IMG/VR virus record: IMGVR_UViG_3300009545_000018
Span: 383,764 to 447,763 of that record
DNA length: 64,000 nt
Strand: one strand, 5' to 3'
In this document: one piece after another, positions 35,136-63,810 of the stretch
Layout: the number at the start of each line of letters is the position of its first letter
Position numbering within the stretch: the first letter of the stretch is position 1
Made by a program: the position numbers and the translations under genes
Notes under the pieces: model-generated
Told to the model about the DNA's origin: nothing
Seen by the model: only the letters and a program-made list of their open reading frames with translations
The model's database searches: none

Positions 35136-36697
35136 CTATTATTTATATCATTATACTCATACTTTAAATAATGATTATAATAAGTCTCGGGTGTACCCGT
35201 TAATTCGTAAAATCTCTTCATAAATAGATCTTTTGCTTGTTGAGGAGGCAATGGATCTATTATAAATGGGTAGGCTTCTTTTTTTATTTCCCAATCTGAA
35301 CGAAGAGTTTTAAATAAATCTCTAGCTTCAGTGTATAACATTTTTGTATCGGCAAATTTAACGCTTTGTGGTTCATTTTGTGATAAACCAAATTTCTTAT
35401 AAATAGTTTCTTGTAAAGAGTTTTCATATTCTTTAAATATATTAAACTTACCAGATCTTTTTAATGGGCTCGGTAAATCTATTAAATATGCTTCAGAAGC
35501 ATCATGCAACAAACCGTGTAATGCATGTGCACTATCACATAAATGACTGACTAAAACAGAATGTTGAGCTACAGAGTTATGTGCACCGTAACCTTCAGCA
35601 AAATATGTTTTAGAGCTTGTTTCTAAAGCTACTACTTCTTGAACACCAAGATCTTCTATTTTTAGAATCTCGGACATATTAATGCTATCAAATTCTTTAC
35701 GCCAATCACCATTTTTTAAACTATTTTTAAAGTTATTTATTAATCTTTTACTTTTAATTTTTCCAAGAGATTGTAATTTAGTAAACCATTTACCAGTTAA
35801 AGTAATATTTTTACAATTTTTATTTGTTTTATATTGTGAATTGGGCACTTTATTATTATCTAATAATTTTTTTATTTTGTTTAAAATTTCTCCCTCATTT
35901 TGAGCAATTGAAATAACAAAACCTTTCTTTTTTGCTGAAATAGTTGCTTCACCATCAAATATTCCTTCTAAATAAGCTAACTCATAATTTAGGGGATCTT
36001 CTTTCCACACATCAATAAATTTAAGCATAAATCTTTGTTTGCCTGACTTTACTGCTTTTACAATTCCTTCGGTTGTTTCCCAAAATTGATTTCTAGATTT
36101 TTTAGAACAAATAAGCCAAGGATGTTCAGCAGATGATTTTAAAATAGTTCCATCTGATAAATGAAGGGCAAATACATGTCTTTTTATTATGCCTGTATGT
36201 AGAACATATGAGTTATCTAATTTTCTACGACTCTCCCTATTATTTTTTTTTAAACCATCAACTCCAGTATTTTCATCAAATCCAATTAATTGTTCAAAAT
36301 TTTTAAGTTCGCCCGCCGGCTTCCAAGTTAAATCTGCCGTTAAAACTTTTGTATCTGGAGTAACACAATAAAATTTTTTAATATGACCAGAAAATCGACA
36401 TGTCATGGCAAGAGCATGAGCTATATCTTGAATTACAATTGTATCAGGATTTGGATTCAAAGGTGTAAATCTTAAACCCGTATAAGTTTGAATCCAAGGC
36501 TCAGATGGATCATAGTTGAAAGGATCTTGTTCTTTATTTTTTAAATCTGTATTATCATTATAAAACTGTTTAATTACATCTAATTCTTCTGGTTGAACCA
36601 ACGGAGAATTTAAATCTTGTGATGCTGTTGATTCCCATTTTATTTTAACTTCGTCAAATTGGGATGGATTATTAATTATATCTTGTTTATCTTTCAT
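35132..36697 (-). CDS. HD-domain 5'-deoxynucleotidase (YfdR/YfbR-like) interrupted by an intein
   Basis: WIQTYTG, DIAHALAxxCRFxGH, FY|SVAQHS, LLHDASEAY; start at MKDKQD just after the dUTPase stop. Confidence 0.88.
   Translation of the reverse strand: MKDKQDIINNPSQFDEVKIKWESTASQDLNSPLVQPEELDVIKQFYNDNTDLKNKEQDPFNYDPSEPWIQTYTGLRFTPLNPNPDTIVIQDIAHALAMTCRFSGHIKKFYCVTPDTKVLTADLTWKPAGELKNFEQLIGFDENTGVDGLKKNNRESRRKLDNSYVLHTGIIKRHVFALHLSDGTILKSSAEHPWLICSKKSRNQFWETTEGIVKAVKSGKQRFMLKFIDVWKEDPLNYELAYLEGIFDGEATISAKKKGFVISIAQNEGEILNKIKKLLDNNKVPNSQYKTNKNCKNITLTGKWFTKLQSLGKIKSKRLINNFKNSLKNGDWRKEFDSINMSEILKIEDLGVQEVVALETSSKTYFAEGYGAHNSVAQHSVLVSHLCDSAHALHGLLHDASEAYLIDLPSPLKRSGKFNIFKEYENSLQETIYKKFGLSQNEPQSVKFADTKMLYTEARDLFKTLRSDWEIKKEAYPFIIDPLPPQQAKDLFMKRFYELTGTPETYYNHYLKYEYNDINNR
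35576..36367 (-). mobile_element. Intein (264 aa) with LAGLIDADG-like motif
   Basis: Starts CVTPDTKVLTAD, SAEHPWL block B, YLEGIFDGEA, ends YFAEGYGAHN followed by Ser. Confidence 0.92.
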
Positions 36698-36698
36698 T

Positions 36699-37211
36699 TT
36701 ACTTTCCTGTACTACCAAATCCACTAGCTCCACGACTAGCATTCCTATTTTTACACAAGACATCATATTCTTCATTTGATATTTCTTCAACAATCATTTC
36801 TTTTCTTTTGACAGGAATAATTTGCCCCAAGGCATCCCCAAAATTAATTTCTAACTTTTTACTATTACTAAATGAAGTTTCATTATTAGTACAAATAATA
36901 GCTTCAGGTATATATTGGCAAGCTAATAATAATTCTCCTTCATAGGTTTCATCGATTGTACCATATAAACAGTGCAATCGTTTTTTACCAAATGTTGAAG
37001 ATCTTGGCTTTAATTCAAACCACCAACCCTCTGGGCAAAAAGTTCTAAAACCTAATGGAATAATAGCTTTCTCAAAAGGAGAAAGCGATAAACTTGTGGC
37101 TGCTCTTACATCCCATCCTGTGGCATGTGGCTCTGCTTTTGTTGGTAAAAACTCTTTATTATTTTTTAGATCTTCTCTTAATGCAAACTTAAAATTTGGA
37201 ATTTCTGACAT
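36699..37211 (-). CDS. dut: Trimeric dUTPase
   Basis: GWDVRA, PRSS, GTIDETYEG, RGASGFGSTG. Confidence 0.93.
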   Translation of the reverse strand: MSEIPNFKFALREDLKNNKEFLPTKAEPHATGWDVRAATSLSLSPFEKAIIPLGFRTFCPEGWWFELKPRSSTFGKKRLHCLYGTIDETYEGELLLACQYIPEAIICTNNETSFSNSKKLEINFGDALGQIIPVKRKEMIVEEISNEEYDVLCKNRNASRGASGFGSTGK

Positions 37212-39869: not shown

Positions 39870-41600
39870 TATTTAATAAAATCTTGGATGGATTATATTA
39901 TTACGGAACATGTATTTTATGTGATGGTAATATGTCTATAAATAATGATGGATTTAATTACCAACCAGCTTATAATAATTGTGGTTTCAATTTAGTATTT
40001 AATCTTGACAAGATGGATAGACTTGTTGTAGATCCAATTTCAGAGTCTGTATATATAAATTATGAACCGGAAGAGTTACTTTTTTATAATAATGATGTTG
40101 ATGATTTTAAAAATATATATGGATATAATGATTGTTTTACAACTATAATAAAATGTAAGAATTGTGATAAGTTTGCGTACTCTATAGATATTCATATTGA
40201 TTTATATGATCAAAAAATATTACATAGTAATTTAAATGATATTACTTGTAATTATAAAGAAAAATATTGGATAATGAATAATTATTATCAAAATACAACA
40301 ACATTATTAAATGATGTTAATGATGAATTGATTAAAGTGCCATTAATTACACTAGAAAAACAAAATATTAATTATATTTTTAATCGTTTACAAAAATTAA
40401 TTATTTTCTCCTAATGCTATATGTAGTGGCATGTTATCTTCAAATTTTTTAGAGCATGGTAAAACGTGCCCAATTTGTAATAAAAAATTGTCTTTATATG
40501 CAATAGTAGGTGAAATAGGAACTTTTAAATGCAATAACAATTATGTTGCAAATAAAAAAAGAAAACTTAATTTTTATCCATTAAGAGATAAAATGTTTTT
40601 ATTACACTCAAGTGTGAATAAAACTGACAATTTTGTAATTAAATTAATGGATGATAATAAATTTGATTTTACTTTCTCTTCTGAGAATTTATTTAAAACT
40701 ATAATTAAATCTAATATAAGTTTTTTTTATATTTGTAATCTATCTTCATTTTATAATGAAACAAGCTATTCTATTAATAGCTATAATGTTGACGGGTTTA
40801 ATGCATGTTATTATAAATTATCCAGTATTCTTTCTTTTAATTATAAAGACGATAATTTAACCCTAACAAATTATAATTCAAGTTCATGTCATTTAGAAAT
40901 GTTCTCTCTATTAGAAGATAATAATAAATATTCTTTGATTTATAATTATGGAACTCAAAAAACTCTATTTTATTTTAATGACTCTAAAGAAAACAATATA
41001 GAACCATCCTTCTTTAAAGAATTTGATATTTTAGAATATTATCCTGATTTTACTAATCATTCTAAAGTTTTGAATAAATTTAAATCTTGGGTTCTATTAT
41101 CATAAATGATTACTATTAATGATTTTATAAATAGCCGAAATCATTGTTTCTGTTGTGGTTCAAATTTAGAAATCTGTATAGAAAGTTTTTCTTTACAAAA
41201 AACACCTTCTTTATTATTAAAAAACAATATATTATTAATTAATTCATCTTACTTTGATATACATATAGATTTATTAAATAATTATGTAATAAAAGGTTGC
41301 GATAAATCACATTGGGAATTTAAACTGGTATTATTTTGTCCTTTACATAAAGAGTTGCCAAAAGATATATATAAGTATGAACTTATTTTTGATATTTATT
41401 GTGGAAAAATAGCCAATGAAACGCCTATAGAATACCTAATGACTGATAATTTTATTTTACAGTCATTTCCATCTCTAGATGAGATGGAATATGTTAGTTT
41501 AAAATCCAACAAAAAAATTACATTTCCTTACTTTGATTATAGTCAGATGTCACTACCAAAGTTAAAGAGTAAACTAAAGACATATTTGTTAATGCAATGA
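39866..41600 (+). CDS. Three Zn-ribbon array proteins (39866-40414, 40431-41105, 41106-41600)
   Basis: N-terminal CxxC; tails KLIIFS, KSWVLLS, KTYLLMQ. Confidence 0.7.
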
Positions 41601-42676
41601 ATACATATCAAAAAATAATGGCTTGTGAAGATAAATTTCAAGCTATCCAAAAAATTATCTCAATAGATGAATTTACAAGAAGACTTTCAGAAATTGATCA
41701 TATTTGTAACGATCCTACTACATGGAATGATCATAAAGCTGCCGCACGTATCATGAAAGAACGGCAAAAAATATCTGATGTAATAAGTAAATATACTTAC
41801 TTTAAAAATTGGGTTCTCTTTTTTAAAGAGATAGTAAATGAACTTCCAGAAGAAATACAATCGTTTAGCCAAGAATCTTCTACTCTGCTATCAGAATTGT
41901 CTGCATTTGAGATTAGTCAGATTTTTAAAGAAGAGTCTGATGATTTGCCTGCTATCCTCTCTATCAATGCCGGGGCTGGTGGTTTAGAGGCAGCAAATTG
42001 GGTTACTATGCTCTTACGTATGTATGCTAGATATGCCAGTAATAATAATTTCAAAGTAGAAATTTTAGACACCAAACCATCTGAAGAGCATAGTTCTATT
42101 TGTACTGATTCAGTATCTATTAGAATAGAAGGTACTTATGCTTATGGTTTTTTTAAAAGTGAGTCTGGTGTACATAGGTTAATACGTAACTCTCCATTTA
42201 GTTCAAATGATACTAGACATACATCCTTTGCTGCCGTGTCTGTTATGCCAGATATAGAAGACACTATTGATATTAATATTTTAGATAAGGATTTAGAAAT
42301 AACTGCAATGCGGGCGGGCGGTAGTGGAGGACAACATCAAAATAAAACTAATAGTGCCGTTAGATTAAAACACTTGCCAACAGGGATTAATATTGCTGTT
42401 AGAGGTGAGAGAGATTATCATCAAAATAAAAGAACAGCTATGAAGATGTTGAAAGCTAAATTATATGAAATTGAGTTAAAGAAGCAACAAGAAGAAAAGA
42501 ATAAACATTTAGATGCTATGCAAGATGTAGCTTTTGGTTCTCAAATAAGAACTTATACTATGAGTCCCACTCAAATAGTAAAAGATCATAGAACAGATTT
42601 TGAATGTAATAATACTAATAATGTTTTAGATGGAGAAATTGATGATTTTATTAGTGCCTATTTGCATATGATGTAA
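41597..42676 (+). CDS. prfB: Peptide chain release factor 2 (no internal frameshift)
   Basis: AGAGGxEA, ESGVHRLIRNSPF (SPF specificity motif), RHTSF, GGQ, FGSQIRTY. Confidence 0.93.
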   Translation: MNTYQKIMACEDKFQAIQKIISIDEFTRRLSEIDHICNDPTTWNDHKAAARIMKERQKISDVISKYTYFKNWVLFFKEIVNELPEEIQSFSQESSTLLSELSAFEISQIFKEESDDLPAILSINAGAGGLEAANWVTMLLRMYARYASNNNFKVEILDTKPSEEHSSICTDSVSIRIEGTYAYGFFKSESGVHRLIRNSPFSSNDTRHTSFAAVSVMPDIEDTIDINILDKDLEITAMRAGGSGGQHQNKTNSAVRLKHLPTGINIAVRGERDYHQNKRTAMKMLKAKLYEIELKKQQEEKNKHLDAMQDVAFGSQIRTYTMSPTQIVKDHRTDFECNNTNNVLDGEIDDFISAYLHMM

Positions 42677-49291: not shown

Positions 49292-49904
49292 AATATAATG
49301 TCATAGGATGCTGTCAAAGGGAGCAAAGTGTTAGAAAGTGGGAGGGTGTGGGAAGATAGCTGAATTAATGTCTTTTAATGTTTTGGCTGTCATTTGGGGT
49401 GGAATAGGATAGAAAGAGAAGATAAGTTATACTTTGATTTAGAAGGTTTAAGGAGGAAAGTAAGATTTTGGATTGGTTTGAACTGTATTATAGAGCTTAT
49501 AGATGGTTTGATGTGTTTAAAATAGCTGTAGACCGGGTCCCCAGCCGCCTCGGACCGTCAAACTCCCCACCTTTTCACTGCTGCTACAATACAGGGTTTG
49601 GCATACTCTCTGCATTATTCAATTAACATACCAATTATTCTTTTATAAGTCTTATTAATTAATTATACTTACATTACAATCATTTAATAAACATTATTAA
49701 TCATTTATGGCATCTTTCTTGCTTTCGCTGTTATTTTGCCTCACTGAACAGCTTTTCAGCCCTTTTAGTAGTCTTGGTACAGTAACTGCAAGATGCAAAG
49801 CCTATACCATGCCATAGCAGTCATTCCAGTTACACTGCACTTACCCATCTTTTAACGGTTAGTACCTGATTAATGTAGCGGGTAGCTGAGATAAGGAGAT
49901 TACT

Positions 49905-50096
49905 ATGGCACAATTCAAGATTTTGTCTCAAGTCAATGGTTCTTGGTTGGAGCAGGGGAAAGATCTCGGCGGTACTACTGTTATGAATCAAGCTGCTCAA
50001 TTGGAAAAGCAGGGATTGAATGTTCGAGTTTTCCGAACTGATATTCCCAAGTTCATTTATGAAACGGGAGCAGGATACCACGGAATCTGGTACTGA
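49905..50096 (+). CDS. First small gene of the motif block
   Basis: AAGGAG SD; follows motif 49844; ends before a terminator. Confidence 0.75.
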   Translation: MAQFKILSQVNGSWLEQGKDLGGTTVMNQAAQLEKQGLNVRVFRTDIPKFIYETGAGYHGIWY

Positions 50097-50102
50097 AAGA
50101 AT

Positions 50103-50130
50103 AAAGGAGCCTAAGGCTCCTTTTCTTTTT
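50103..50130 (+). terminator. Intrinsic terminator
   Basis: AAAGGAGCC-TAA-GGCTCCTTT with T tract. Confidence 0.85.
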
Positions 50131-50244
50131 ATCTTTGTGGTATAGGATTTGCTTATTGCAATTAATATACCAAGACTTTTTAGATAAAAGAGCTCTACCC
50201 ATCCTATAACGGAATCAAAGCAGCTATTGTAAGGTAGGTATCAT

Positions 50245-50616
50245 ATGGAATTCACCTATGAGAATGATGAAGGGGAAGACATTACAGTCACCTTCCCTAG
50301 TGTTAAGGTAGTTTGCCCAAGGTGTAAAGGGCACGGAACCCACCTTCACAATGATATTGGTAGCTATGCTTACAGCGTAGAAGAATTCCAAGATTCCTTT
50401 GATGAAGAAGAACAGGCAGAGTATTTTCGCCATGGTGGAAGATATGACGTTCTCTGCGAACGCTGTCACGGTAAAAACGTGGTGGATGAGATTGACGAAG
50501 AGAAGTGTCAGCAGGATCCGGCTTTGACAGAAGCCTGGCAAGCTTTTTGTCAGAAAGAAAAGGATGATGCTGATTATGAAAGACTCTGTGAATCAGAGCG
50601 GCGCTTTGGTTGCTGA
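50245..50616 (+). CDS. Acidic protein with CxxCxGxG Zn finger
   Basis: CPRCKGHG...CERCHGK. Confidence 0.75.
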   Translation: MEFTYENDEGEDITVTFPSVKVVCPRCKGHGTHLHNDIGSYAYSVEEFQDSFDEEEQAEYFRHGGRYDVLCERCHGKNVVDEIDEEKCQQDPALTEAWQAFCQKEKDDADYERLCESERRFGC

Positions 50617-50653
50617 TTGAGATCCCATCCTATAACGGATTACTGCTAATAGT

Positions 50654-53199
50654 ATGACAACCCTGCAGAATCTCAAGAAGCGTGACTTGTCTTTTGCTTA
50701 CCAGATTGCAGTGGCAGACTGGAAAAAACTTTCTGCTATGTGTTCTGGGCAGTCAGCTGACGATCTGGCTAATGGCTTTCATGGTAAGTCATTGGCTGGA
50801 GTGCTGTTTGATTCGGAATTGGCAGTGGATCAGATTGCAGCTAAGCTGGATCGGTTGAATCCTTAAGGGATTGAAAGGGAGGTTTACCTCCCTTTCTTTT
50901 TAATTGATGCTGGTATGCCGTTTGCATATTGCAATGTTCGAGCCAACCGTCATAAAGTTTGCTTTAAACTTGTTCCCATCTGATAACGGATAGATCCTAA
51001 TAGTATAGTTTTTCTGAGGGTTCTGACTAAAAGTAAAACCCTCCCCCTTTACGTTGCAAACAGTAACTGTAGTAGGCAATAAGCTTCCAGTTATATTGTA
51101 ACAAAGTTTGGCGGTATCTTAAAACCGCCACATTTTTTAATCCCATCATTTAACGGAAAGGTCTAAGTAATATGAATACTCTTTTTAAGTTGGTTGTTGT
51201 GATGTTGGCATTGTTTGCCGTGACTTTCTTGATTCAAACCTATGCCAATTCTTGGTTTCATCAAGTGGCATTCACGGCTCCTATCATTGGAACCATGAGC
51301 TATGCAGCTTGTACCATTGTGGCAGTAGGTTGTGTGTTGCTGTCAAAGCTGCATTGGGGCAAGTAATGTTAGGTTTCGTGGTGTTTTGCCTGGTAGGTTT
51401 TTTTACTGGGCATTGGGTAGTGGGTGGTATTATTGGAATTGTAGTATACGCCCTAAATAAGTAACTCCCATCAATAAACGGTTGAATGTTATTGATATGA
51501 CATATCATCCCAGTTACCGAGCAGTAGATTCTGTTGGTACTGAATGTGAAACTTTTGAACATGAGTATCAAGCGGTAGACTATTGGACTGGTGCTCCTAC
51601 TGGAATTGATATTCAATATTGGAATGGTTCTGAATGGGAAGAATATAATCCTAGGACTTTCACTAAAGATTAATTCCCATCAATTAACGGATTGTACCTA
51701 GTTATTGAGATGCAAAACCTAAAAGACCGATTGGAAAAGTTAGCAGATTCTTTTAAGGGTACTACCAATTCTTTTGGTAGGTTTACCGTCACCAATGTAG
51801 GTTGCGGGATTCTGAGAGTTGATGGTGAAGGTGTGCAGTATACTCCCGATGTAATATTGGGTTTTCTCAATCGACACGGCATTAAGTAATTCCCATCAAT
51901 AAACGGATTAGATCTATTAGAAAGGATAAAAAAGATGAAAGCATTCAATTGTTATATTGTCAAGCGCAAGGGCAAAGTCATCAAGGGTGAGAGTCGCAAG
52001 CTGCGCAATGCAGCCAAGCGACAACGTCAAGGTCGCTAAACCAAAAGAATGAGAGCTTAATTGTTCTCATTCTTTTTTAATTGGTCTTGGCATATGCTTT
52101 GCAACTTGCAATAAGCTTGCCAGGCGTTATATTTTTATATCCCATCTATTAACGGAAAGACATACTAAGTGGAGGCTGGTAATGTTCATTAAGATTAAAG
52201 CTTTGTTCAAGCTGTATGATCTGGGAATCATTAGCAGCGAACGTTTATCCGAAGCCTTGGTAAAGCTCTCCCCATCTGATAACGGATAAAGATTATTAAT
52301 TATGAATACTCTAGAATTCAGCCGAGCTTGCCGAACAGAGTTTGCTGCTTTGCCGGAAGCCTATCGTAATGACGATGTCTTGGAATTCTGGTTTGAGGGT
52401 GGGCTTTGGTATTGCCGCCCCAAACTATCAGAAGTAACAATTCTAGGAAACTGGGAATGTTATTATAGTGATGGTGTATGGGAGAATCAAGAAGCCCATC
52501 TTTAAACGGATGATAGGAGTCTAATATGAAAGCCAGGACTCAGTATCTGATTAATGTTTATGTCACGTTGAATAGTGCTGGTCGTAAGGATCAATTCCGC
52601 CGGGGTCGTTACAATGACCCGGAACACTCTGCCATAGCTTGGGGTGGGGTTCATGGTCCTCTTTTGGGCTGCGAACCTTCCGCTGAGGAATTGCAAGAAT
52701 TGGTAACAGAGGGTTACATTACAGTTAAGTCCAATGGCGCTGTAACTCCTACAGCTAAAGCTAAGGCGGCTAGGACTGGAAGCTTAGGCAGTATTAGTCC
52801 TTAATACCAATGAATAGTTTAGAGCCTAAAGAGACAGAAGATCAACGCAGAGCCCGATTAGCATCAAGAGAAGATCTAGCGTGTTTAGAGTGCCACCATA
52901 GGGTTTGCTTATACTTTTGCTCTAAGAGAGTTAAAAAGCGTCCCATCAAGTAACGGATTAGTGTATCTAATATGAAGTACCTAGATGAAAAGTCTGTTAC
53001 TGCAGTGCGTCGAACTAAGCCTCTAGCAGTTAGGACTAGGTCAGGATATGGGAGTAAACTTCCAACTGATATTATGCTGCAATTGAATAAGCGTTGGTAT
53101 CGGGTCTATGTGATGATCTATTCTAATGCTGGTTCGGCATATATCTTGCAAAAGGGAGAAAAGGTTTTGCTTGGGTCCTATGATCCTCAACCCATCTAA
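50654..53199 (+). CDS. Small motif-associated genes: 50654-50866, 51172-51366, 51366-51464, 51497-51673, 51710-51889, 51935-52039, 52182-52289, 52302-52505, 52526-52804, 52810-52953, 52972-53199
   Basis: Each starts just after a motif or is coupled to the previous gene; products unknown (two are hydrophobic). Confidence 0.65.
50873..50901 (+). terminator. Intrinsic terminator
   Basis: GAAAGGGAGG/CCTCCCTTTC with T tract. Confidence 0.85.
51005..51138 (+). ncRNA. Candidate small structured RNA
   Basis: ORF-free unit between motif 50975 and a terminator; stems GAGGGTT/AACCCTC, GTTGCAA/TTGTAAC, TAACTG/CAGTTA. Confidence 0.5.
51109..51138 (+). terminator. Intrinsic terminator
   Basis: TGGCGGT/ACCGCCA with T tract. 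Confidence 0.75.
52043..52078 (+). terminator. Intrinsic terminator
   Basis: AAAAGAATGAGAGC/GTTCTCATTCTTTT. Confidence 0.8.
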
Positions 53200-53210
53200 T
53201 AACGGATTCC

Positions 53211-53241
53211 AGGGGAGCTGTAATGGCTCCCTTTTCTTTTT
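53211..53241 (+). terminator. Intrinsic terminator
   Basis: GGGAGCT/GGCTCCC with T tract. Confidence 0.8.
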
Positions 53242-53330
53242 GGTGGGGTGGCAAGGCTTTTGCATATTGCAAGGCTCGTGCCACGCCCCAATAACAACCC
53301 ATCTATTAACGGATTAATAGGTATTATGTA

Positions 53331-53446
53331 TCCGATTGGTTGGCACCTTTTTAGTTAGTAGTGAAACATAATTCATTAGCTTTCACTGGCAATTAATGAA
53401 TTATGTTCTGACTAAAACTAAGGTTCGATTCCTTAGAGTCGGGCTA
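53331..53446 (+). ncRNA. tRNA-like RNA with greatly extended central arm
   Basis: CCGATT/AGTCGG acceptor-like stem, TAAGG-TTCGATT-CCTTA T-arm, long central stem. Confidence 0.55.
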
Positions 53447-53479
53447 ATTCCCATCTAATAACGGTAGAATATAATTAAT

Positions 53480-56400
53480 ATGAATCGCACTAAGCAAAAC
53501 CTAGATTCTGCTAAGATGCTGGTTGCTAAAGCTCTGGCTATTCTGGCGCAAGCTGGTTTGGCTCAACGATAGAGAAGACAATGAAAAAGCCCAATCAAGA
53601 ATTGTTTCGGCTGCTTCGTTTTGCCATTCGTTTTCCAGGCTGGCACTCTTACGATTCCAGTGTAGCTAAACATATCAAAAGGGCAGCTGCATTGGAATTT
53701 CTGGAAGTTGATACCAAAACCAAACAATTCCGATTGATGCCAAGTCAATGGGCGGAAGACTTTCGCAAAGGTCCCATCGTTTAACGGTTGAGGGTATCTA
53801 ATATGAATCTCAATAAAAGAATCAAGCTGGATCGTTCCTTCGAACTAGCAGAAGATTCTGCTAAGCCTGATATTACTGGAACCATTGTGGGCTTGGGACA
53901 TATTGTCGGCATAACAGTTTATATCGTGGAACTGGATCAAGGTTTCTATTCGCCAGATAGGCGAATCTATATTAGCAGAATGGTAGTAGCAAGGGAAAGC
54001 CTTCGTCCCATCGAATAACGGGTGAAGGTAACTAACTGGGGACTGAAACCCGAGCTGACCGAAAGGAAAAGCTCCATATAGTATTACTGGATGAGATCCT
54101 AATCCGGGTTGTAAAAGAATAACGGTTGGTACCGTTTACAATCATGTCGAAAGACCTTAGGCTGGCGAAGTAAGTCCCCATCATTTAACGGCGGAAGATT
54201 AATAACATGAGGAAAAACGCTCAAAAGGTTCTGCAAGCTTTCAATGCTGGGCAGGCTGCTAATGAGAAAACCATTAGCACCAATGGTAAGGAATTGTTTT
54301 CCTACGCCATGTTGATCGCCCGCAAGAATGGCGATAAGGTAGAGCTTATCGATTATAGTAAAGCTCCCAGCAACACTACCCGCAGTCAGGTTAACGCAGT
54401 GCGGCAATTCTTTCCTGCTAGTCAGATTGTGGTAGTGGAGAGTTTCTAAAAACAAGTTTTCCTAAAACTTGTTCCCATCCTTTAACGGAATAAGGCTCTT
54501 ACCATGAGAGTTGGTCCTGCTACACTATCCTACTTGAAACGTTTGGGCGATGAGGAAGCTGCTTTGATGTTGAAAGCCGGTTCATTGGTTTTCAGTCAAG
54601 CTCAAAAAGCAGGTTTGACGCCGGGTTTCTTTTTCATTCAAGGGCAACTGAGAATGGTGCCAGTACCCAAAACCTTTGCAGTGAGTCCCATCTTCTAACG
54701 GAAGGATCCTTCTAATATGGAAGAGTTAATGGATCGAGCCCGGGAATGGGTCAATGAGAATTATCCTCACTTGGAAGGCGATGACTATTCCGCCAAGCTA
54801 GAAGAGACACTATGGGATCTGGCGGAGATTGATGGCACGGATCCTATTAACTATCTGACTTATTATAATTAATTACACTAAAGCAATAATTGAGGTTTAA
54901 TGATTCGAGCCCCGCCGAGCTAGGCGTCTCTAATGTTTAATAATAGTTGATTGAATTTATAAGATTACAGTTTGAGAGGAATGGGGAGAAGGCGACCTTC
55001 TCCCCATTCCAATGTTATACATTGGTATAGGCTTTGCATCTTGCAATCCTTATACCAACCTTGCTATTATCTTTCCCATCCAATAACGGAAGCATTCAAT
55101 TAGATATGACAATTAGTTATCACAAGCGAGACTTGCAACATGCCCAAAAGATTGCAGAAGCAGAAAAGTACCATATCCTGAGTTTCAGTGACGGTGCAAA
55201 CTCCGCGGAGCATCTAGTTCGGGTAGTAGAACTGGAAAACGATCTTCGTCGTATCTCTCAACAATTGAATCCCATCAAGTAACGGCTAGAGACATAATAT
55301 AAGAAACATGGCAAAGTCAAACAAGTACTGTAGGGATTGTGAGTGTTATCATCCGGCAGGCGATTGTAATGGTAATGATCGTCGGCAAGATCATAAGAAG
55401 CGAGAAAAGGTCAAGCAAGCCGAAAGCCCCATGTTCTTCTATGATCAAGATCCAATGTTGATGGATCCATAAAAACCTGTTCCCATCTGATAACAGTTAA
55501 TGTAAGTGGTTGTATCATTGAACGCGGCGTAAAAGACTATAATTAATAAGGTTCACGCGGGAAAAAGATAGTCTTTCCACTTTTCCATCTAATAACGGCT
55601 CCTAGATACTAATTGAAAGAATAAAGACAATGTTTTATGTAACCAAGAATGACGCGCAATACATCATGGCTGCCCTGCTGATTCCGACCCTGCTGGGCTT
55701 TTACTCTCTCTGCCTTTACTTCTAAAAACTTAATAGGCAGTTTAGAATAGCTGCCTATCTTTCTTCCGGTTTAGCTCAGTTGGCAGGGAAACATTAATGA
55801 CAGCTAATTGGTTGCATAATGTTTCCCATCCATTAACGGTTGAAGGTGTCTAATATGACTTGGAATAAAGAACAGATTAGGATTGCCATTCAAACCCGTG
55901 ATGTTGTGGTAGAGCGTGCCATTGTTGCTATCTATCAACGTCAGACACTAGACGAACAATCCTCAGAAGAAACCAAGCATTCTAATGGAGTTGGTTTTAG
56001 TGGGGCGCATGCACGTTTGGGCACGTATTATGCCAAGTGGATTCTTCAGGGACGTCACTTAACCGGAAACCATCTAGTCAAAGCTCGTGCCATGGCATTG
56101 CATTACGTAGGACAATTAGAGCAGATTGCTGCACAAGTTTAATTCAAACTTGTTCCCATCTATTAACGGATTGATATTACTAATATGGATTACCTAACTC
56201 GTAACATTCAAGACACTGGTAGCAAAACGGTTTTGATGCCAGCCAGCCACGTTCGTGGGAGCACCATTATCTTTTGGACTTGCTGTGTGTTCTGGACCAT
56301 TGCCGCCATTGCTTATCACAGCATGCACTGAACCAAGATGCATATCTTCCTGTTAGTCATTATGGCATACTGTCATGTCTCCTGGGAATCTACCGATAGG

Positions 56401-57052
56401 GGACAGCCTGTTTATGATGCTAACGGGTATAACTACAGTGACAATGTTATCTCCTGTCATATCGATCCCATTGAGGATAATATAACAGAACAACGTCACC
56501 ATATTACTTGCTGGGGCACTGATAAGCAGGTAGTGGTAGATCGGTCCTTGCATTGTGATAAGCAGCAGATTGAAGATTACATTGAAGTGCAAAGCTTATT
56601 CTTAGGCTGTAAGTATCACTGAATGTTAGGCATTATTCTTGCCGCTGTAATTCCGATAGTAATACCAGTTATTATTAATTGTTTGGATTACTTCATAGAT
56701 TAAATCCCATCTGATAACGGAGAAGGGTTTGTAGGCATTATCAAGAGGGAATTTATATTACTGAACATTCCAATATGTTGGAGTTGATTAATCGTTGCAA
56801 TAAGCTTGCAACCTTACAGACAACTATTACATGGATGTATGTAGTTGTCTGAGTTTATAACGGCACTGTAATGGTGCCGTTTCTTTTATGCGCGTGTTGG
56901 TACGTGCTTTGCATATTGCAATAAGCTTGCCAACCATCCGTCAAGCCAAATTATTATCCCATCTAATAACGGAAGGATACACGTAAATGAAGCTAAAGTT
57001 AATAGGTCAAGGTACACACACTCGTAAGGGTGCCGCAATCTATGGCGACTAA
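53480..57052 (+). CDS. Small motif-associated genes: 53480-53572, 53581-53784, 53803-54018, 54207-54449, 54504-54698, 54717-54872, 55106-55282, 55308-55472, 55630-55725, 55855-56142, 56185-56331, 56338-56622, 56987-57052
   Basis: Starts re-assigned to the ATG about 15 nt after each motif where present; products unknown. Confidence 0.65.
54037..54180 (+). ncRNA. Candidate multi-stem structured RNA
   Basis: Closing stem TGGGGACT/AGTCCCCA, GAAA tetraloops, several nested stems. Confidence 0.6.
54978..55010. terminator. 15-bp perfect hairpin without a U tract
   Basis: GGAATGGGGAGAAGG-CGA-CCTTCTCCCCATTCC. Confidence 0.6.
56736..56887 (+). ncRNA. Candidate small structured RNA
   Basis: ORF-poor unit after motif 56706; GTTGCAA/TTGCAAC and CAGACAACTA/TAGTTGTCTG hairpins, then a terminator. 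Confidence 0.4.
56859..56887 (+). terminator. Intrinsic terminator
   Basis: AACGGCAC/GTGCCGTT with T tract. Confidence 0.8.
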
Positions 57053-57149
57053 TCCACATAGGTTGTTCTGATTAGAGAATAGCTTTAAAAGCTCCGAACA
57101 CTTTAGCTTCCCATCCTATAACGGTTTCATACTCTGATTGAGATACACA

Positions 57150-57518
57150 ATGAAGATCGAATGTACCACTGAGGAATTGGTAGCGCTGCAACGTACCACG
57201 GAACTGGAATCCTTGCAATATGAAGTAGTAGCATTGCGAGAACGGAATTCTTCCCTGGAAGATCGGATCGCTAACCTGAAGGATCACAACACTGACCTAC
57301 AGCGGGAATTGGTGAAGCCGGCAGCTACTATTAATGGCGCCAGTATGCAGCAAGTTTCGGATCTGTTCAAGGTATACTTGGGTGGTGCCAATAGGGAAAC
57401 CCCTATTGGAGCCCAAAAGATCGCTGCTATCAAAGCCGTTCGTGAAGTTTTCAAGTGCGGATTAAGGGAAGCCAAGTTTATCATTGAAGGTAACTTGGAA
57501 AACGAGCGATACGGCTGA
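57150..57518 (+). CDS. Coiled-coil protein with ribosomal protein bL12 (L7/L12) C-terminal-like domain
   Basis: KIAAIKAVREVFKCGLREAKFIIE matches the bL12 KIxxIKxVRxxxGxGLKEAKxxVE signature. Confidence 0.7.
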   Translation: MKIECTTEELVALQRTTELESLQYEVVALRERNSSLEDRIANLKDHNTDLQRELVKPAATINGASMQQVSDLFKVYLGGANRETPIGAQKIAAIKAVREVFKCGLREAKFIIEGNLENERYG

Positions 57519-57556
57519 ATAAACTTCCCATCCTTTAACGGTTGATTGCATTCAAT

Positions 57557-60500
57557 ATGGATCCTGAGCAATTGATTCAGCAAAGCGCGGCTTCTGGGGA
57601 AACCATCAAGATTGATTGGAATGTCAAAGTGTTTTCTCACTTGATGCGCCGGTCTCCTATTTACACCGAATATACAACCTTCACGGAATTCCAGGGTAAA
57701 GAATTGGATAAGTCCTGGTGTATCCAATTGATACATTAACCCATCCTTTAACGGTTAGAGACACCTAACATGACATTCGATAAAGGACAGCGAGTCAACA
57801 CTCCTAATGGTCTTGGTACTATTAATTACCAAAGGATGGTACCGCCCGATTACAGTGAAGCTATGATAGTTTCTGTCTTTCTGGATTCTCGCCAATTGGA
57901 TCGGGACTTGGGAAAGTATTCTGGAACTATCTTTCCGGCAGATGTTGTTACTCCCATCCAATAACGGACTACTAATAATAGTATAAGACAAATGGTAAAA
58001 ACCAACCACCATAACGAATGGTTTCGACCCGTTACCAAAACCACTTGCTCTTGCGGTCAAAAGAAAACGCAAGTTTATAGTTGGGGAGAATATGTGTGTG
58101 CCAAGTGGCGCACCATTGACTATGTGTGTCAAAACTGTTTTCCGATTGTAAGCGAACGTTTACAGCAGCATAAAAAGGAATGCGGCTGTGAATTTAAGCT
58201 AATTGGTTATCGCGGCTGTAGTTTGCCTGACTGGCTTAAAATGCCTGTGCAATCTTGCCAGTTTTCCCATCAAGTAACGGTTGAAGATGTCTAATATGAC
58301 TAAGCAACAAGCTCTGCAGGACTTTAAAGAAAACGTACTGCCGGCAGTCAAACAGCAATATCCACATGATAAGCATGCTGTTATTCAAGCTTGGAATGAT
58401 TACACTGACAGCTTGTGTAAAGACCGGCAGATTACCGCCAAGCAATACCATAACTGGTCCAATCCTTTTTGAGCCTCATGTCTAAGTGTGAACATGTATT
58501 TCCACGTGTAGCTAATTACGAGTTATTAGGCACTGGTGGCAAAAGGATTATATGGTCCTGCAATAACTGTCTTTCCATCAAGGTTCACTTCATTAATGAT
58601 GTAAAAGTTAATGATAAATGGACTACATATGAAAAAACAGTCATAGTAGACTGTTTAGATTACGATCCTGATCCCATCCAGTAACGGTTAGGTACAACCA
58701 ATATGACAACTATGTATCTAATACGCGATACCACTGGCAAGATATTGTCGAGTTGCTCTTTCAATTCCGTTGCAGCTTTATGTGAAGCAGTTAAGGTCTG
58801 GCATTATTTGGGCAACATTAGCGCCGATAGCTATGGTGTTGTAGTTATCTTTTAGTTCCCATCCTATAACGGCTAGGTACAATTAATATGAGCCAGTTAT
58901 CCGAAGCCCTAAAAAAAGTCGCTGCTATTGCATCTTCTACCTACCTAGGAGAAGAGACTGAAAAGTATAGTCAAGGCAGCGGTACTTACAAGGTTAATAA
59001 GTGGAAAGTAGAATTGTCTTTCCAGGGGCGCCGATATACTTGTCCCTTATATAAGACAGGTGAAGGTCTTCGAAAGAAAAAGTACAGCTTTAATAGCAAG
59101 CTGGGACAATGGGGTAATTTTCCCGTTGCAGGATCAAACCACCCTGATGTAGCTGACGTTATTCATTGTCTGATTACTGATACTCATTGCGGCATGATGG
59201 CATTCGACGAGTATTGCAGCGAGTTTGGACTTGATACTGATTCCCGTGCTGCTTTCAAAGTGTGGGAGCAATGCGTGGAAACTGCTGGACCTTTTAGACG
59301 GTTTCTAGGTTCGGAGTTTGATCATCTGTCAATGTTGGAACACTAATGAAAACTTACAGGCTCAAAGAAAACCATCCCACCTATCAGAAATTTCTTAAGC
59401 TATATAATCTAGCTGAGAAGTTAGGTATCTCTCTTGAATTTATTGGAGATCAATGTTTTTTGGTAGATTTTGATCTGCCTAAGATACGGTTTCAAGTGAA
59501 AGATATAGAGCCTAATCATATCTTAACTTCGTTTCCTTATCCAACGGAATTTGAGATTACATATCAGAAGCCCCATCCATAGACGGAAGTGTGTATTTAA
59601 TATGCGCAACTATCAAAGCATGATTGAGCGACGAAAAGCGGAATTCCAAGATCATTTCTCGGATGTTGGATTGTCCAAACAGTTCATTCAATATTACGAG
59701 AATGGCAAGCGTATCAAGGTGCGGTTTCCCGATGGTCGTACAGAGTGCGGTACCGTTGGAGTTACAACCGGTTGGGTCCCTTGCTTTCTGCTAATGCATC
59801 GCAGTACTGATACTGGAAGCTCTACAGTCTTGGCAGACATGGATAAGATTGTGGGCGTGCAAGTCAGTAAGAAGTACGTTACGCCGTGAATGGAAAAGGA
59901 GCATCTGCTCCTTTTCATTTTGCCCAATATGGTATGTGCTTTGCATATTGCAGCATTCGTACCACTACCTCCGGGGCAAAAAACAAACTCCCATCACATA
60001 ACGGGTTGATACTAAAGGTAAGAGATATGAAAGTTAAAGTGTTTCCCGTCAATGGCAGCTATACTATCTGTGCGGTTTTACCTAACGGCAGCATGGATCC
60101 GCATTATCCTGCTATTACGGATATTGCGCATCATGGTAATGCGCAATACATTGCGGACAGAATCAATGAGGCTTATCGGGCGGGTGAAACCAATAAAGCC
60201 ATTGAGATTCGAAAAGTCTTGGGTCTTTTATATTAATCCCATCTTCTAACGGATGAATGCAATTAATATGGCAAAACAATATCCCTGTGATGGTTTTACT
60301 CGACTCACAGAAGAATCAGACTTGGTTCCAGGTACCGTGCTTCGCATGGTTAACTTTATCGATAACCCTGCTGTTAGCGCTCCCTTTTCCGATTGTGTCA
60401 TTACTAAAGTAGAAGATGGTATTGTCTACCTGAATCGTCCCATGGGATGGTCCAATGGCAAAACTCATACAGAAGAGTTTTGTGCCTACACTACCAGGGT

Positions 60501-62428
60501 TGTCAAGTTCTGGCATACTGTACTGACCGCTAGTGGTAAGCCTTATAGTATGTTTGGGGTGTAGTTCCCATCCTGTAACGGAACCAGTATATTAATTATG
60601 GATAGATTTACAAGGTGTCTGCTACTAGGTCTATTCTTCTTTGTTCTAAACGTTCTTTTATATAAGATGTTTAGGTTGGTTTATTGGGAACGTACAGTCA
60701 TTACCTCTATAGTAGCACTTTATGTCGGTTGGTTTCATGGCAGTTGGTTTTTCAAAAAAAGAAATAAACCCATCCAGTAACGGATATTATCTTCCTATTG
60801 TAAGAAAGTAAAAGACAATGGAAATTCTTTCTCATTCTCGCAGTGTTAAGGTAGAACAATACAGCTTGTGTTTCGATTATATCGGAGCCAGCAAGCATCA
60901 TGGTTTCTCGTTTGACTGCAATGCAGCTGGAGAAGTAGATGTTGTGGCTTTGCAGAAAAAGCCGGCAGCATATGATAACTATCTGAAATGTCTGTCAGGC
61001 GAGCATAAGGTTCATGCTCCTTACGTTCAGGACTTTTCGCATCGTTATACCGAGCCGGCAGTAGGTCGGTGTGTCTGCGGCTGCAAAGTAGAATTGGCTC
61101 GTTTTACCAATACCTGCGATGGTTGCAATCGGGATTACAATTACAGCGGAGATCTTTTGGCACATAGAAGCCAATGGGGTGAGGAAACTGGGGAAAGCTA
61201 CTGTGATATTCAGGACCTGTAATGAAAAAGCGCAATCGCTGTAAGTGTAAAAAGTGTGGTACGATTATTGAATCCAAACATCGGCATGACTTTGTTTACT
61301 GTAGATGTAAGTCCATTTTCACTGATGGTGGAACTGATTACATTAGAAGGGGAGGAGATCTTTCTTTAATTGAGGAAGTTCCAGAAGATAACAACATCTC
61401 CTAACGGAATATATTATGAGTTACGAACTAAGCTTCAGTGAAACATTCTTCTTCGGCGAATGTGATCCCTACGAAACTGACATTACTGCAACACCTACCA
61501 GTGTGTATGCTGCTATCTGCTGCTGTAAGGAACTGGATCCTGACAAGTGGCAAGACATTGCAGCGGAAGTCTTTCAAGTAGAGCCGGATCTATTGACAGA
61601 GGAAGCTGTCATGAGAAAGATTCGTAAAACCGACACATGTTCTAACTTGAACGTGCCTGTACGGGTGTGGATAGATGAACAGGGTTGGTATAAACTAGAA
61701 GTGTATTGATCCCATCTGATAACGGTGGAGCATATCTAATATGAAGATTACAGCAGATCGTTTCAGTGAGCTATCTCTTTCGATTCAAGATCAAGCCACT
61801 AGTCTTTACAATAAGGCTTTTCGTTTGGGCTTTAATGCCGAGCTTGGCGCTAAAGATGGTGGCACTGAAACTGTCATTAGCATGATTACGGAACTGGAAT
61901 CTACCTTGCGGGTATTGAAACGACGCCTGCAGGAAACCCTCCCATCCTCTAACGGGTAGAGATACTTATTATGCAAGCCAGTCTTTGTGATTCAGATTGC
62001 AGTGAAAATGCTGTCATAGCAATCCTTCAAGGTGAAGGTGCTGCTAAGTTTGCCAAAGAGACATGTCAATCGCTCAATGGTAGCAACTGGGAATGTGATG
62101 GCAATGATTTTGCCTATTGTCTCACGGAAAACTGTCCAAGCTTATTGGAAGAATTCCAAAAAGACTTGGGCGATATTGAGATAAACGATTCTGAGTATAC
62201 TCCCATCACATAACGGATAATAAATATAATATGTTAACTCAAAAGGGAATGGAAATTCTGTTGAAGATGTATTCTCTACATCGCAGCAATTTCTTAGAAA
62301 CTCATGATGGTTGCAATCGGAATGATTGCGAGCGGGATTTTCTCCATAACATTCTGTCGAAAGTTTCCGGTAGTTATAACGAAATTGTCTATGCCAAGTT
62401 AGCTAACGAGATTGAAAGCATTCGATGA
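57557..62428 (+). CDS. Small motif-associated genes: 57557-57739, 57770-57964, 57992-58294, 58296-58472, ~58478-58684, 58703-58855, 58888-59346, 59346-59582, 59602-59889, 60027-60236, 60268-60564, 60598-60780, 60818-61222, 61222-61404, 61416-61709, 61741-61959, 61971-62213, 62231-62428
   Basis: Same unit architecture; several are Cys-rich Zn-binding peptides (57992, 60818, 61222). Confidence 0.7.
59893..59921 (+). terminator. Intrinsic terminator
   Basis: GAAAAGGAGC/GCTCCTTTTC then ATTTT. Confidence 0.75.
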
Positions 62429-62823
62429 AAGCTGTACTACTAGGATTGTTACTGTTAGGTTGCGGAGATCATGATAATCCTCCTCCGGAAGCCCCTAAGT
62501 TTTGCATTCAACCCGCCGCCACTTATGTAGAAAGTTTTAGTCCGGTCTATGGTAGTTGTCCAGGTTTACCATCAGTTTTGATTACCATTCCGGAAGATGG
62601 AAGTTTTCCAATCAATACGGATGAAACCTGTCATGTTAAGGTAGATGGTTGCAAGGCAGACAATACTGGGTGCGTGTATCAGAGTGACGGCTGCACTATC
62701 AAGTCTGATACCACTGTCACCTTTAAGGATGATGGTACTGCAGTAGGCTATATGACAGTATCGACAGCTAAGTGTGGATACGACTGTATGGGTATCTATG
62801 AGTTGTACTTAGTTAAGCAATAA
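62425..62823 (+). CDS. Cys-rich lipoprotein
   Basis: MKAVLLGLLLLG-C lipobox. Confidence 0.75.
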   Translation: MKAVLLGLLLLGCGDHDNPPPEAPKFCIQPAATYVESFSPVYGSCPGLPSVLITIPEDGSFPINTDETCHVKVDGCKADNTGCVYQSDGCTIKSDTTVTFKDDGTAVGYMTVSTAKCGYDCMGIYELYLVKQ

Positions 62824-62825
62824 CT

Positions 62826-63776
62826 ATGGAACTGGTAAAGTTAGGCGCTAAGCAAGGCACAGAATGCTGTACCTGTAGAAACAGGATTAAGCATAACGAG
62901 ATCTGTTATCGAAAACAACGCTTAGCCGAAACTTATCACGAACGATTACATGCTAACGGTAAAGGCATGGTTCAATGGTACCATCACAAGTCATGCATTG
63001 AAAAAATTCCCATCTGATAACGGATACCTACGAGTAATATGAGTAGCAAATGCACAGTTAAGAAAGCCAAAGAGTTGAATGCCTATGACATTAAATTCAA
63101 GCTAACGCAGGGAGAATTAATTGCATTGTACAATGCATTAAAACGATATTCCTCTGCTTCTACTGGAGGCGCGGCTGTACACGCTTATCTGTGTAATAGT
63201 TTGCAAGAGCTGTCTGTGGAACATGGCGTCAAGTTTCCCATCGACTAACGGAAGAGCTTATTTAATATGCTAAGTATGAAGGTAGAGACGGTTGTTAACG
63301 CACTAGTTACTCAATTGCTGTCAACGGATCTATATAATGAAGCAATTCATTTCCACTTGGATTGCCGGCTCAATTACTTTGAGGATGGCAAGCGTAATTA
63401 TCGAACGGCACGCGCCTTGCATTTGCTATATCAGCGTCATACGGGAAGCACCTATATCAGTGCCTTTTCTGCTGTCTTGGATAATCCATTCGATAAGATT
63501 GATAAGGTCAAAGATTGGAATCATGAATGCACTCATGACTACTGCTGGCGTAGTGTAAACTGTTTCTCTGCCGTCTATTTTTCTATGGCAGAAGATATTA
63601 ATCGTCAGTTGGTAAAAGCTGGATTGTCGGAAGTAGCACCCATTGATATGAGAGAGTTTAACTCTTTTGGTGGCATTAGCGGAAATGTTTTCCAATTGGT
63701 TCCAGTCAAGGTAGAACTGGATCCTACAGACAAGAATCATCATAGAAGGATGATAACAGTTTCTCCCATCCTTTAA
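62826..63776 (+). CDS. Three small genes (62826-63017, 63039-63248, 63267-63776)
   Basis: All end inside the next motif (IPI, FPID, SPIL). Confidence 0.7.
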
Positions 63777-63810
63777 CGGAATAGTGCTTAGATTATTACC
63801 AGGAAAGTAA

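Follow-up and report, generated by a model that had tools for sequence, protein, structure and literature searches.

In bacteria, sigma-54 (RpoN) recognizes −24/−12 promoters with the consensus YTGGCACGrNNNTTGCW, including a TGGTAT variant at nifH. These promoters are solitary and unidirectional, and they depend on an enhancer-binding protein with an upstream site. Sigma-54 is the one bacterial sigma factor that needs an ATP-driven activator, and its closed complexes are stable and silent without one. Little is known about phages exploiting this system. One precedent is Pseudomonas phage YuA, a virulent phage for which promoter fragments were annotated as "-24/-12 consensus" (Ceyssens et al. 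2008, as cited in PMC10914365 and in the NC_010116 record). However, when we scanned the YuA genome, we found no TGGYA-N6-YTGCW match at all, single or double.

Several other described systems share some of the layout reported here. Symmetric sigma-70 promoters are reported to drive two divergent starts separated by 18 bp (Warman et al. 2021, Nature Microbiology), a property that reportedly rests on the near-palindromic −10 hexamer and is common in bacterial chromosomes. In T4-type phages, PeSL cassettes (early promoter plus stem-loop) are reported to lie between small ORFs in hyperplastic regions (Arbiol et al. 2010), with promoters of the sigma-70 type that are not palindromic. The phage N4 virion RNA polymerase uses hairpin promoters with a 5-bp stem and a 3-nt loop.

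Here, we examined a 35-bp element in a 64,000-nt stretch (the window) of IMG/VR virus record IMGVR_UViG_3300009545_000018, a 447-kb jumbo phage from soil. Each element consists of two sigma-54-type sites facing each other. Literature searches found no published description of this arrangement.

Results

A first-pass annotation had claimed ten head-to-head double sigma-54 sites between 49599 and 59964, with exact GG-N10-GC spacing and non-complementary inner bases. We confirmed this observation, with the count refined to nine clear sites and one degenerate site of the form TGGYA-N6-TTGCA-N3-TGCAA-N6-TRCCA. A scan with TGGCANNNNNNTTGCANNNTGCAANNNNNNTGCCA at up to 3 mismatches found nine sites, whereas shuffled sequences gave 0.00 matches. 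A looser scan (up to 5 mismatches, spacers 2-5) added the degenerate site, in which only the forward half is good. Every site in the window has a spacer of exactly 3, both halves of all nine keep GG-N10-GC, and the two example sites cited in the annotation, at 52088 and 53249, are exact. The other 49 kb of the window contained no sites apart from isolated weak half-sites. The features are as follows, with twin sites listed without a strand:

49599..49633, twin site 1, weakest of the nine (CTGCA and TTCAA in the −12 boxes), first of a cluster of three at the left edge of the GC-richer module
49708..49741, degenerate tenth site; the forward half, TGGCATCTTTCTTGCT, is good and the reverse half has decayed
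49775..49809, twin site 2, 34 nt upstream of the first CCCATC motif and of gene 49905-50096
50138..50172, twin site 3, directly after the terminator at 50103-50123
50911..50945, twin site 4, directly after the terminator at 50873-50896
52088..52122, twin site 5 (exact match), after the hairpin and T-run at about 52046-52078
53249..53283, twin site 6 (exact match; the reverse half, TGGCACGAGCCTTGCA, is the best sigma-54 match in the window), after the terminator at 53211-53233
55023..55057, twin site 7 (exact to TGGYA...TRCCA), after the long hairpin at 54979-55009
56898..56932, twin site 8, after the terminator at 56859-56881
59930..59964, twin site 9, after the hairpin and T-run at about 59894-59921; it starts the last operon, which runs beyond 64000
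50103..50123, plus strand, example of the intrinsic terminators that precede the sites by 8-15 nt (also 50873-50896, about 52046-52078, 53211-53233, 56859-56881 and about 59894-59915); this one also scores as a terminator on the minus strand
49844..63779, plus strand, module of small genes, each preceded by CCCATCNNNTAACGG (the CCCATC motif; 47 copies, all on the plus strand)

Each half fits the sigma-54 consensus, including at positions that no search had fixed, and the matches include the TGGTAT variant known from nifH. In 210 half-sites from 105 unrelated viral twin sites, position 6 was Y in 98%, position 7 was R in 97%, position 8 was R in 73%, and T/C preceded TGG in 73%. By contrast, TGGCA pentamers without a −12 box in the same loci had flat flanks. 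Identity between the two halves at the six N positions was only 0.28 in the 105 viral twin sites, indicating a dyad of two half-sites and not a hairpin, as the annotation had proposed.

Every site sits directly after an intrinsic terminator (a hairpin and T-run) and before the first gene of a plus-strand operon, and the forward halves in the window point toward those genes. Within the module, a purine-rich stretch follows the CCCATC motif, and the ATG lies 15-16 nt after it. The first copy of the motif in each operon lies 14-34 nt after a twin site. The module, from about 49.6 kb to beyond 64 kb, has a GC content of 0.42 against 0.28 elsewhere. Sigma-70-like promoters were not enriched in it (41 found against 39.3 expected). 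Reading the inner TTGCAA as a sigma-70 −35 box fit a downstream −10-like hexamer at only 3-4 of 9 sites and did not explain the outer boxes. The CCCATC motif did not form a conserved hairpin, as its N3 showed no pairing with downstream bases in 185 copies, but it could itself be a promoter for a phage polymerase.

We next asked whether these features were retained in relatives. In about 20 related soil and groundwater contigs (GC 0.41-0.55), 51 distinct sites showed the same order of terminator, site with spacer 3, CCCATC motif, and gene. In the window and these contigs, the site lies 4-35 nt before the motif, or up to about 400 nt for sites at the head of a cluster. GG-N10-GC was kept, the N positions varied freely, and a T-run lay at −14 to −8. 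The layout resembles PeSL cassettes in that a terminator is immediately followed by a putative promoter, repeated between small genes of unknown function in a phage module. Flanks shared no extended homology beyond the motifs, so no cassette mobility is shown. In 55 sites of the clade, the half pointing into the genes was significantly better conserved than the other (23 against 49 mismatches; 27 sites against 6; p = 3e-4). Still, within the window alone, both halves scored equally well even though all genes point one way. About half of the hits from a CCCATC pair scan of metagenomes were tandem tRNA-Glu genes and not relatives. The same scan of IMG/VR returned only the window's own contigs, the only indexed one of which ends at 64000. 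Megablast of the region against GenBank phages and an Rfam search of the window found nothing.

The arrangement is not peculiar to this phage. The head-to-head layout, with a spacer tightly limited to 2-5 nt, occurred in more than 120 stretches of viral contigs, including jumbo phages and a marine phage family with tandem arrays. By contrast, 596 Gb of bacterial and archaeal genomes gave only 14 hits, mostly unrelated perfect hairpins in actinobacteria. Across viral contigs, sites were intergenic in 62% of cases against 31% for random positions, and flanking genes were tandem (32) or divergent (21) and rarely convergent (6). The marine family places arrays of 3-4 twin sites in the divergent control region next to the terminase genes. 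In small marine phages, the sites form lattice-like arrays (gaps of 2-5, 10, 20, and 10-12 nt) packed too tightly for every site to hold a polymerase at once. In phages of Pseudomonas, a genus that has sigma-54, one twin site is conserved across species with free N positions. In PAK_P4, the coverage-based annotation of an early minus-strand transcript (PAK_P4as16) places its 5′ end inside the reverse half. Methylophilales phage MEP301, a weak relative of one site-bearing contig, had no sites, and locus L007 had no relatives among the GenBank phages.

A search for RpoN-like and enhancer-binding-protein genes, a check proposed with the original observation, gave no candidate. No rpoN homologue and no canonical (PspF- or NtrC-like) enhancer-binding-protein gene was found in the window or within about 7 kb of any site in 2.16 Mb of site-bearing loci, although 384 kb of the phage genome lay outside this search. 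Pfam scans of about 40 window ORFs also found none. Upstream of each site there was only a terminator and the previous gene, and no upstream activator site was found. A search of IMG/VR for close relatives of E. coli RpoN found none, although the peptide stretches used as queries were poor. An RpoN-box DNA scan found only 6 IMG/VR contigs with a canonical box, unrelated to the sites and lacking twin sites, and a GAFTGA-x12-GGT scan gave 104 contigs, none with twin sites. PHROGs has no RpoN-like family. One family (phrog_7998) resembles PspF, but its tblastn hits in the GenBank phage collection were mostly bacterial DNA filed as phage. The C11 host-gene paper does not mention rpoN.

Discussion

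We interpret the 35-bp elements as the putative operon-start promoters of a separate gene module, a reading we hold with moderate confidence. In this view, each element is two interdigitated, oppositely oriented sigma-54-type promoters whose −12 boxes are 3 bp apart. An RNA polymerase carrying sigma-54, either the host's or a phage factor with the same DNA-reading geometry, would bind one half at a time. The forward half would start transcription about 12 nt past its GC, inside the right half, and read into the operon. The reverse half would start about 18 bp away on the other strand and run into the often bidirectional upstream terminator, giving only a short RNA. It may also compete with the forward half, or share with it the few base pairs where melting begins. 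The terminator immediately upstream would shield a slow-firing closed complex from read-through transcription. The sequence match, the position, the conservation in relatives, the strand asymmetry, and the restriction to viruses come directly from our analysis, whereas binding by sigma-54, the start sites, mutual exclusion, and the mode of activation are inferred. Several observations fit this model less well, namely the absence of nearby rpoN or activator genes in the loci searched, the lattice-like marine arrays, which would also fit cooperative binding of a smaller protein, and the equal scores of both halves within the window. Moreover, the sites are obligate head-to-head pairs, an arrangement that bacterial sigma-54 regulons essentially never use, so something beyond ordinary sigma-54 promoter function must select for it.

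The interpretation in the first-pass annotation was only partly supported. Its reading of the halves as sigma-54-type elements was supported, and its inference that two holoenzymes would occlude each other is reasonable from geometry. However, it described the paired sites as convergent. With a start 12 nt past each GC, the predicted starts cross (top strand near position 27, bottom strand near position 9), so the transcripts would diverge, about 18 bp apart. By our arithmetic, this separation for spacer 3 equals that reported for symmetric sigma-70 promoters. However, a sigma-54 promoter has no built-in symmetry, so here the twin must be selected for, and it is virus-specific.

An alternative that we consider unlikely, though the strongest of the rivals, is that the element is an operator or activator site for a phage-encoded dimeric or tetrameric protein, perhaps with an RpoN-box-like or winged-helix fold, that reads four TKGCA pentamers. 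The resemblance to sigma-54 promoters would then reflect a shared reading head or convergence. In its favor, the element is symmetric, both halves are kept even where all genes point one way, marine arrays show preferred gaps, no rpoN or enhancer-binding-protein gene was found nearby, and the arrangement is essentially absent from bacterial genomes containing millions of true sigma-54 promoters. However, the same half-site, with the same weakly conserved flanks, occurs in unrelated phages of GC 0.33-0.59 that share no proteins near the sites, which is easier to explain by a universal host factor. In addition, the GG box always comes first and the TTGC box second, with different flanks, which identical subunits reading direct repeats would not give. 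The 2-5 nt variation in spacer between phages would not be tolerated by a rigid dimer, although this is weak evidence because the spacer is fixed at 3 within this clade. No candidate regulator gene was found next to the sites, and the forward half is the better conserved.

The decoy, roadblock, or insulator reading offered in the annotation is doubtful but not excluded. Holoenzyme bound without productive transcription could titrate sigma-54 or reinforce the terminator 8-15 nt upstream. The stability of silent closed complexes, the absence of a detected activator gene or upstream site, and the fact that either orientation of two interdigitated sites can be occupied are all consistent with this. 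Yet a decoy has no need to sit at operon starts, and a roadblock has no need for the gene-directed half to be better conserved, as a promoter predicts. The module would also have no other operon-level promoter, since sigma-70-like sites are at chance level, and the marine arrays lie between divergent operons, where promoters are expected. Lastly, a cruciform or N4-type hairpin promoter, or an RNA hairpin forming part of the terminator, is very unlikely: although the central TTGCA-NNN-TGCAA could form a 5-bp stem with a 3-nt loop and the outer pentamers are also complementary, the stems are conserved in sequence and do not covary, the inner 6+6 bases are not complementary, spacers of 2 nt are common, the flanks and outer boxes follow the sigma-54 consensus, and no large virion-type polymerase gene was found in the window.

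A bolder and more tentative possibility, which our data do not rule out, is that many uncultivated phages, from 35-kb marine phages to jumbo phages of about 450 kb, use a promoter class of their own, in which two interdigitated sigma-54-type elements share the few base pairs where DNA melting begins. This would let the phage take over the host sigma-54 polymerase, or a sigma-54-like phage factor, without a classical enhancer-binding protein. Activation might come from a new phage activator, perhaps acting from solution, or from the twin geometry itself. The sigma-54 polymerase would then serve as a switchable, bidirectional phage transcription machine.

The conserved and virus-specific twin arrangement of sigma-54 promoter elements implies that phages do one of two things. 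Either they use sigma-54 polymerase in a way that bacteria do not (bidirectional, self-competing, and perhaps independent of an activator), or they carry an unknown factor with the same DNA-reading geometry. The conserved site in Pseudomonas phages makes this question testable in laboratory strains. Either outcome would add a new chapter to phage transcription control, give a sequence signature for finding operon starts in uncultivated phage genomes, and provide compact bidirectional or insulated promoter parts.

Twin sites within the window

We scanned the window for TGGCA-N6-TTGCA-N3-TGCAA-N6-TGCCA with up to three mismatches and found nine sites, whereas dinucleotide-preserving shuffles gave none. 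The sites start at the following positions:

49599
49775
50138
50911
52088
53249
55023
56898
59930

A looser scan added a decayed tenth site at 49708, whose forward half is intact. All sites in the window have a spacer of exactly 3 nt, and apart from scattered weak half-sites, there is nothing comparable in the other 49 kb. The first-pass annotation had reported ten such sites, and its coordinates, examples, and count are therefore essentially right. We also noted isolated partial copies of the right half at 51078-51091 and 56795-56811 (GCAATAAGCTTCCA and TTGCAATAAGCTTGCAA), which share the inner sequence AATAAGCTTGCC of sites 52088 and 56898. These may be remnants of decayed or duplicated sites.

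Genomic context

The window is part of a 447,763-bp metagenomic jumbo-phage contig (IMGVR_UViG_3300009545_000018, also Ga0105237_10000004). The first 49 kb have a GC content of 0.28 and encode ribonucleotide reductase, PhoH-PIN, collagen-like tail fibers, thymidylate synthase, DHFR, GMP reductase, a release-factor homolog, and homing endonucleases, with TATAAT-like boxes preceding these genes. Individual features of the window include the following:

34416-34895; 28430-29251, a SET-domain protein and a papain-family cysteine protease
35132-36793; 31212-31835, a 553-aa deoxynucleotide phosphatase-like gene split by a LAGLIDADG domain (an intein-like or homing-endonuclease insert), with a free-standing GIY-YIG/NUMOD3 homing endonuclease nearby
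41597-42676, a full-length class-I release-factor homolog (PCRF and RF-1 domains)
57150-57518, a small protein combining a coiled coil with a domain resembling the C-terminal domain of ribosomal protein L7/L12 (E = 3.6e-6)

At about 49.6 kb, the GC content rises sharply to 0.42, and a block of small plus-strand genes of unknown function begins. This step coincides with a change of expression signals, from TATAAT-like boxes to twin sites plus a gene-start motif (the CCCATC motif). The junction is also covered by an independent 48.6-kb assembly. The source soils are samples 3300009545 and 3300025914. The module may have been acquired from another phage, or it may represent a separate temporal class of genes.

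Within this block, almost every gene is preceded by CCCATCNNNTAACGG, with 47 copies at 49844-63779, all on the plus strand, against 1.8 expected. A purine-rich stretch follows the motif, and the ATG lies 15-16 nt after it. The motif likewise precedes almost every small gene in other loci of our collection (L274, L275, L278, L302-L304, L308, L312, and L313), for a total of 185 distinct copies in 23 sources with no conserved pairing. Its TAA, or a stop codon in the N3, often ends the upstream gene (proteins ending ...P-I-x), and stop codons make up 18% of N3 against about 5% expected. The motif could be a promoter for a phage polymerase that starts at GG, an RNA-processing site, or a translation signal.

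The twin sites of the window occur only in this block and always in the same place. Each lies 8-15 nt after an intrinsic terminator or strong hairpin and before the first CCCATC motif of the next operon. This distance is 14-34 nt in eight of the nine sites, the exception being site 1, which heads a three-site cluster 210 nt from the motif. By contrast, sigma-70-type promoters are at chance level in the block (41 found against 39.3 expected). Non-coding gaps of the module also contain tRNA-like fragments, namely a T-arm-like GGTTCGATTCC and a D-arm-like GCTCAGTTGG (53420-53445 and 55762-55780), although ARAGORN and Rfam call nothing in the window. Other non-coding gaps are at 50990-51141, 54022-54176, and 55497-55583.

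Distribution of the arrangement

To determine whether the arrangement is peculiar to this phage, we scanned IMG/VR with the exact pattern and a spacer of 3 nt, which returned 41 stretches. A scan allowing 0-24 nt between the inner boxes returned at least 120. Among distinct sequences, the spacer is 2, 3, 4, or 5 nt in 107 cases, with at most four cases for nearly every other length, and the same range accounts for 207 of 260 adjacent head-to-head pairs. The carriers include other jumbo contigs of 210-481 kb, where the sites again follow terminators. They also include a marine family of small phages, in which three or four twin sites, 46-50 bp apart, fill the divergent region between the terminase/structural genes and the opposite operon. 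These marine phages (loci L044, L047, L051, L052, L065, L074, and others) carry lattice-like arrays of sigma-54-type sites, with preferred gaps of 2-5 nt head to head, 10 or 20 nt back to back, and 10-12 nt in tandem.

By contrast, the same pattern with a 2-5 nt spacer gave only 14 hits in 596 Gb of bacterial and archaeal genomes. Most of these are perfect hairpins in high-GC actinobacteria, and at least two others, on short contigs of metagenome-assembled genomes, look like phage DNA binned with a bacterial genome. Bacterial chromosomes hold very many genuine sigma-54 promoters yet do not use this layout. The layout is therefore a viral feature.

Sequence of the half-sites

Although our searches fixed only TGGCA and TTGCA, the unfixed positions in 210 half-sites from 105 distinct viral twin sites still follow YTGGCACGrNNNTTGCW, the sigma-54 consensus as used in published work. 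T or C precedes TGG in 73%, position 6 is C or T in 98%, position 7 is G or A in 97%, and position 8 is a purine in 73%. By contrast, TGGCA pentamers without a -12 box in the same loci have flat flanks. The six inner bases of the two halves are no more alike than chance (0.28), so the element is two half-sites and not a hairpin. Moreover, the GG box always comes first and the TTGC box second, with different flanks, which fits two different reading modules, as in sigma-54, better than identical subunits on direct repeats.

Relatives of the module

To find relatives of this module, we scanned metagenome contigs for two CCCATC motifs 185-215 nt apart. This yielded about 20 soil, sediment, and groundwater contigs with GC contents of 0.41-0.55, which carry dense CCCATC motifs together with twin sites of spacer 3. 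The other hits were tandem tRNA-Glu genes (loci L268, L269, L271, L282-L284, L287, L298, L299, L301, and others), whose acceptor and D-arm stretch CCCATCGTCTAACGG is identical to the 12 fixed bases of the gene-start motif. This may be coincidence, or it may hint that the motif mimics or derives from the 5' part of a tRNA (tRNA-style punctuation of mRNAs).

Fifty-one distinct twin sites from this clade show one architecture: a terminator hairpin and T-run, about 10 nt, the 35-bp site, 4-35 nt (longer where sites are clustered), the CCCATC motif, and the gene. The N positions vary freely while GG-N10-GC is kept in both halves. Loss of this spacing in related sites had been named in advance as grounds for rejecting the sigma-54 reading, and the spacing is not lost.

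The gene-directed half is also better conserved in the clade, with 23 mismatches against 49 for the other half, and the reverse half is the worse one in 27 sites against 6 (p = 3e-4). Within the nine window sites alone, the two halves score alike. A directional asymmetry aligned with the genes is what a promoter predicts, whereas a symmetric operator, a decoy, or a roadblock does not predict it.

Inferred geometry

The sequence match, the placement of the sites, their conservation in relatives, and the asymmetry between halves come directly from the analysis, whereas binding by sigma-54, the start sites, and mutual exclusion are inferred. If a start site lies 12 nt past the C of each GC, the forward promoter would start at about position 27 of the element and read right, and the reverse promoter would start at about position 9 and read left. 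The transcripts would therefore diverge, about 18 bp apart for spacer 3. Each polymerase would need the other's -12 box, so only one could be bound at a time. The positions just downstream of each GC, where sigma-54 complexes begin melting, would coincide in the central spacer.

In the window, a leftward transcript would run straight into the upstream hairpin. Several of these hairpins are flanked by A and T runs, and one scores as a terminator on both strands. At most, a short RNA would result. In this view, placing a terminator right in front of each site makes sense for a slow-firing closed complex that read-through polymerases would dislodge.

Candidate readers of the sites

We next searched for factors that could read the sites. 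E. coli RpoN and PspF find no relative in the window or in 2.16 Mb of site-bearing loci, and Pfam scans of about 40 window ORFs show no sigma factor and no sigma-54 activator. Canonical RpoN boxes occur in only six IMG/VR contigs, and GAFTGA-type activators occur in 104 contigs, none with twin sites. PHROGs has no RpoN-like family. Unrelated phages that share no neighboring proteins carry the same half-site. The most economical reader is therefore the host's conserved sigma-54 polymerase, although this is inferred for a phage without an assigned host and from a window that leaves out 384 kb of its genome, and it does not explain how such promoters would be opened without a known activator. A diverged phage factor with the same reading geometry remains possible.

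A twin site in cultured Pseudomonas phages

One IMG/VR hit is Pseudomonas phage vB_PaeM_C2-10_Ab02, of the genus Pakpunavirus, whose single twin site (spacer 2) lies in an intergenic stretch of the early region. The site is conserved in PAK_P4 (at 55824-55857) and EM, and in P. plecoglossicida phage SYP, with the boxes kept and the N positions free, whereas in P. putida phage KoPa-4 the inner boxes are partly decayed. A strongly conserved non-coding block of about 90 nt follows it. This shared arrangement of site and block in the Pseudomonas phages and relatives was noted at loci L078 (10163-10196) and L392 (1415-1540) and in their alignment A1. PAK_P3 keeps only the reverse half and the block.

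The PAK_P4 record annotates an early minus-strand RNA (PAK_P4as16) from RNA-seq, with its 5' end inside the reverse half. These data are suggestive only, as the annotation is coverage-based and a sigma-70-like promoter is also annotated there. However, Pseudomonas has rpoN, so the hypothesis is testable in laboratory strains.

Interpretation

Full-text literature searches found no description of head-to-head sigma-54 sites in phages. The closest items were a report that phage YuA uses sigma-54-like promoters, although its genome in fact has no consensus match, and a small T7-like phage protein with weak structural similarity to sigma-54.

The observation made in the first-pass annotation is confirmed and is much broader than could be seen from the window alone. 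Its interpretation is partly supported: the halves are sigma-54-type and form a dyad of half-sites, but the suggested decoy or roadblock role is not the reading we favor. Our best reading, which we hold with only moderate confidence, is an operon-start promoter made of two interdigitated sigma-54-type elements. It would be read by sigma-54 polymerase or a functional analog, with the gene-directed half as the productive one. A site for a symmetric phage regulator is possible but unlikely, and a non-productive decoy or roadblock is more doubtful still. A structural element is very unlikely. Although the half-site itself is of an already described sigma-54 type, its twin, virus-specific architecture appears to be new.
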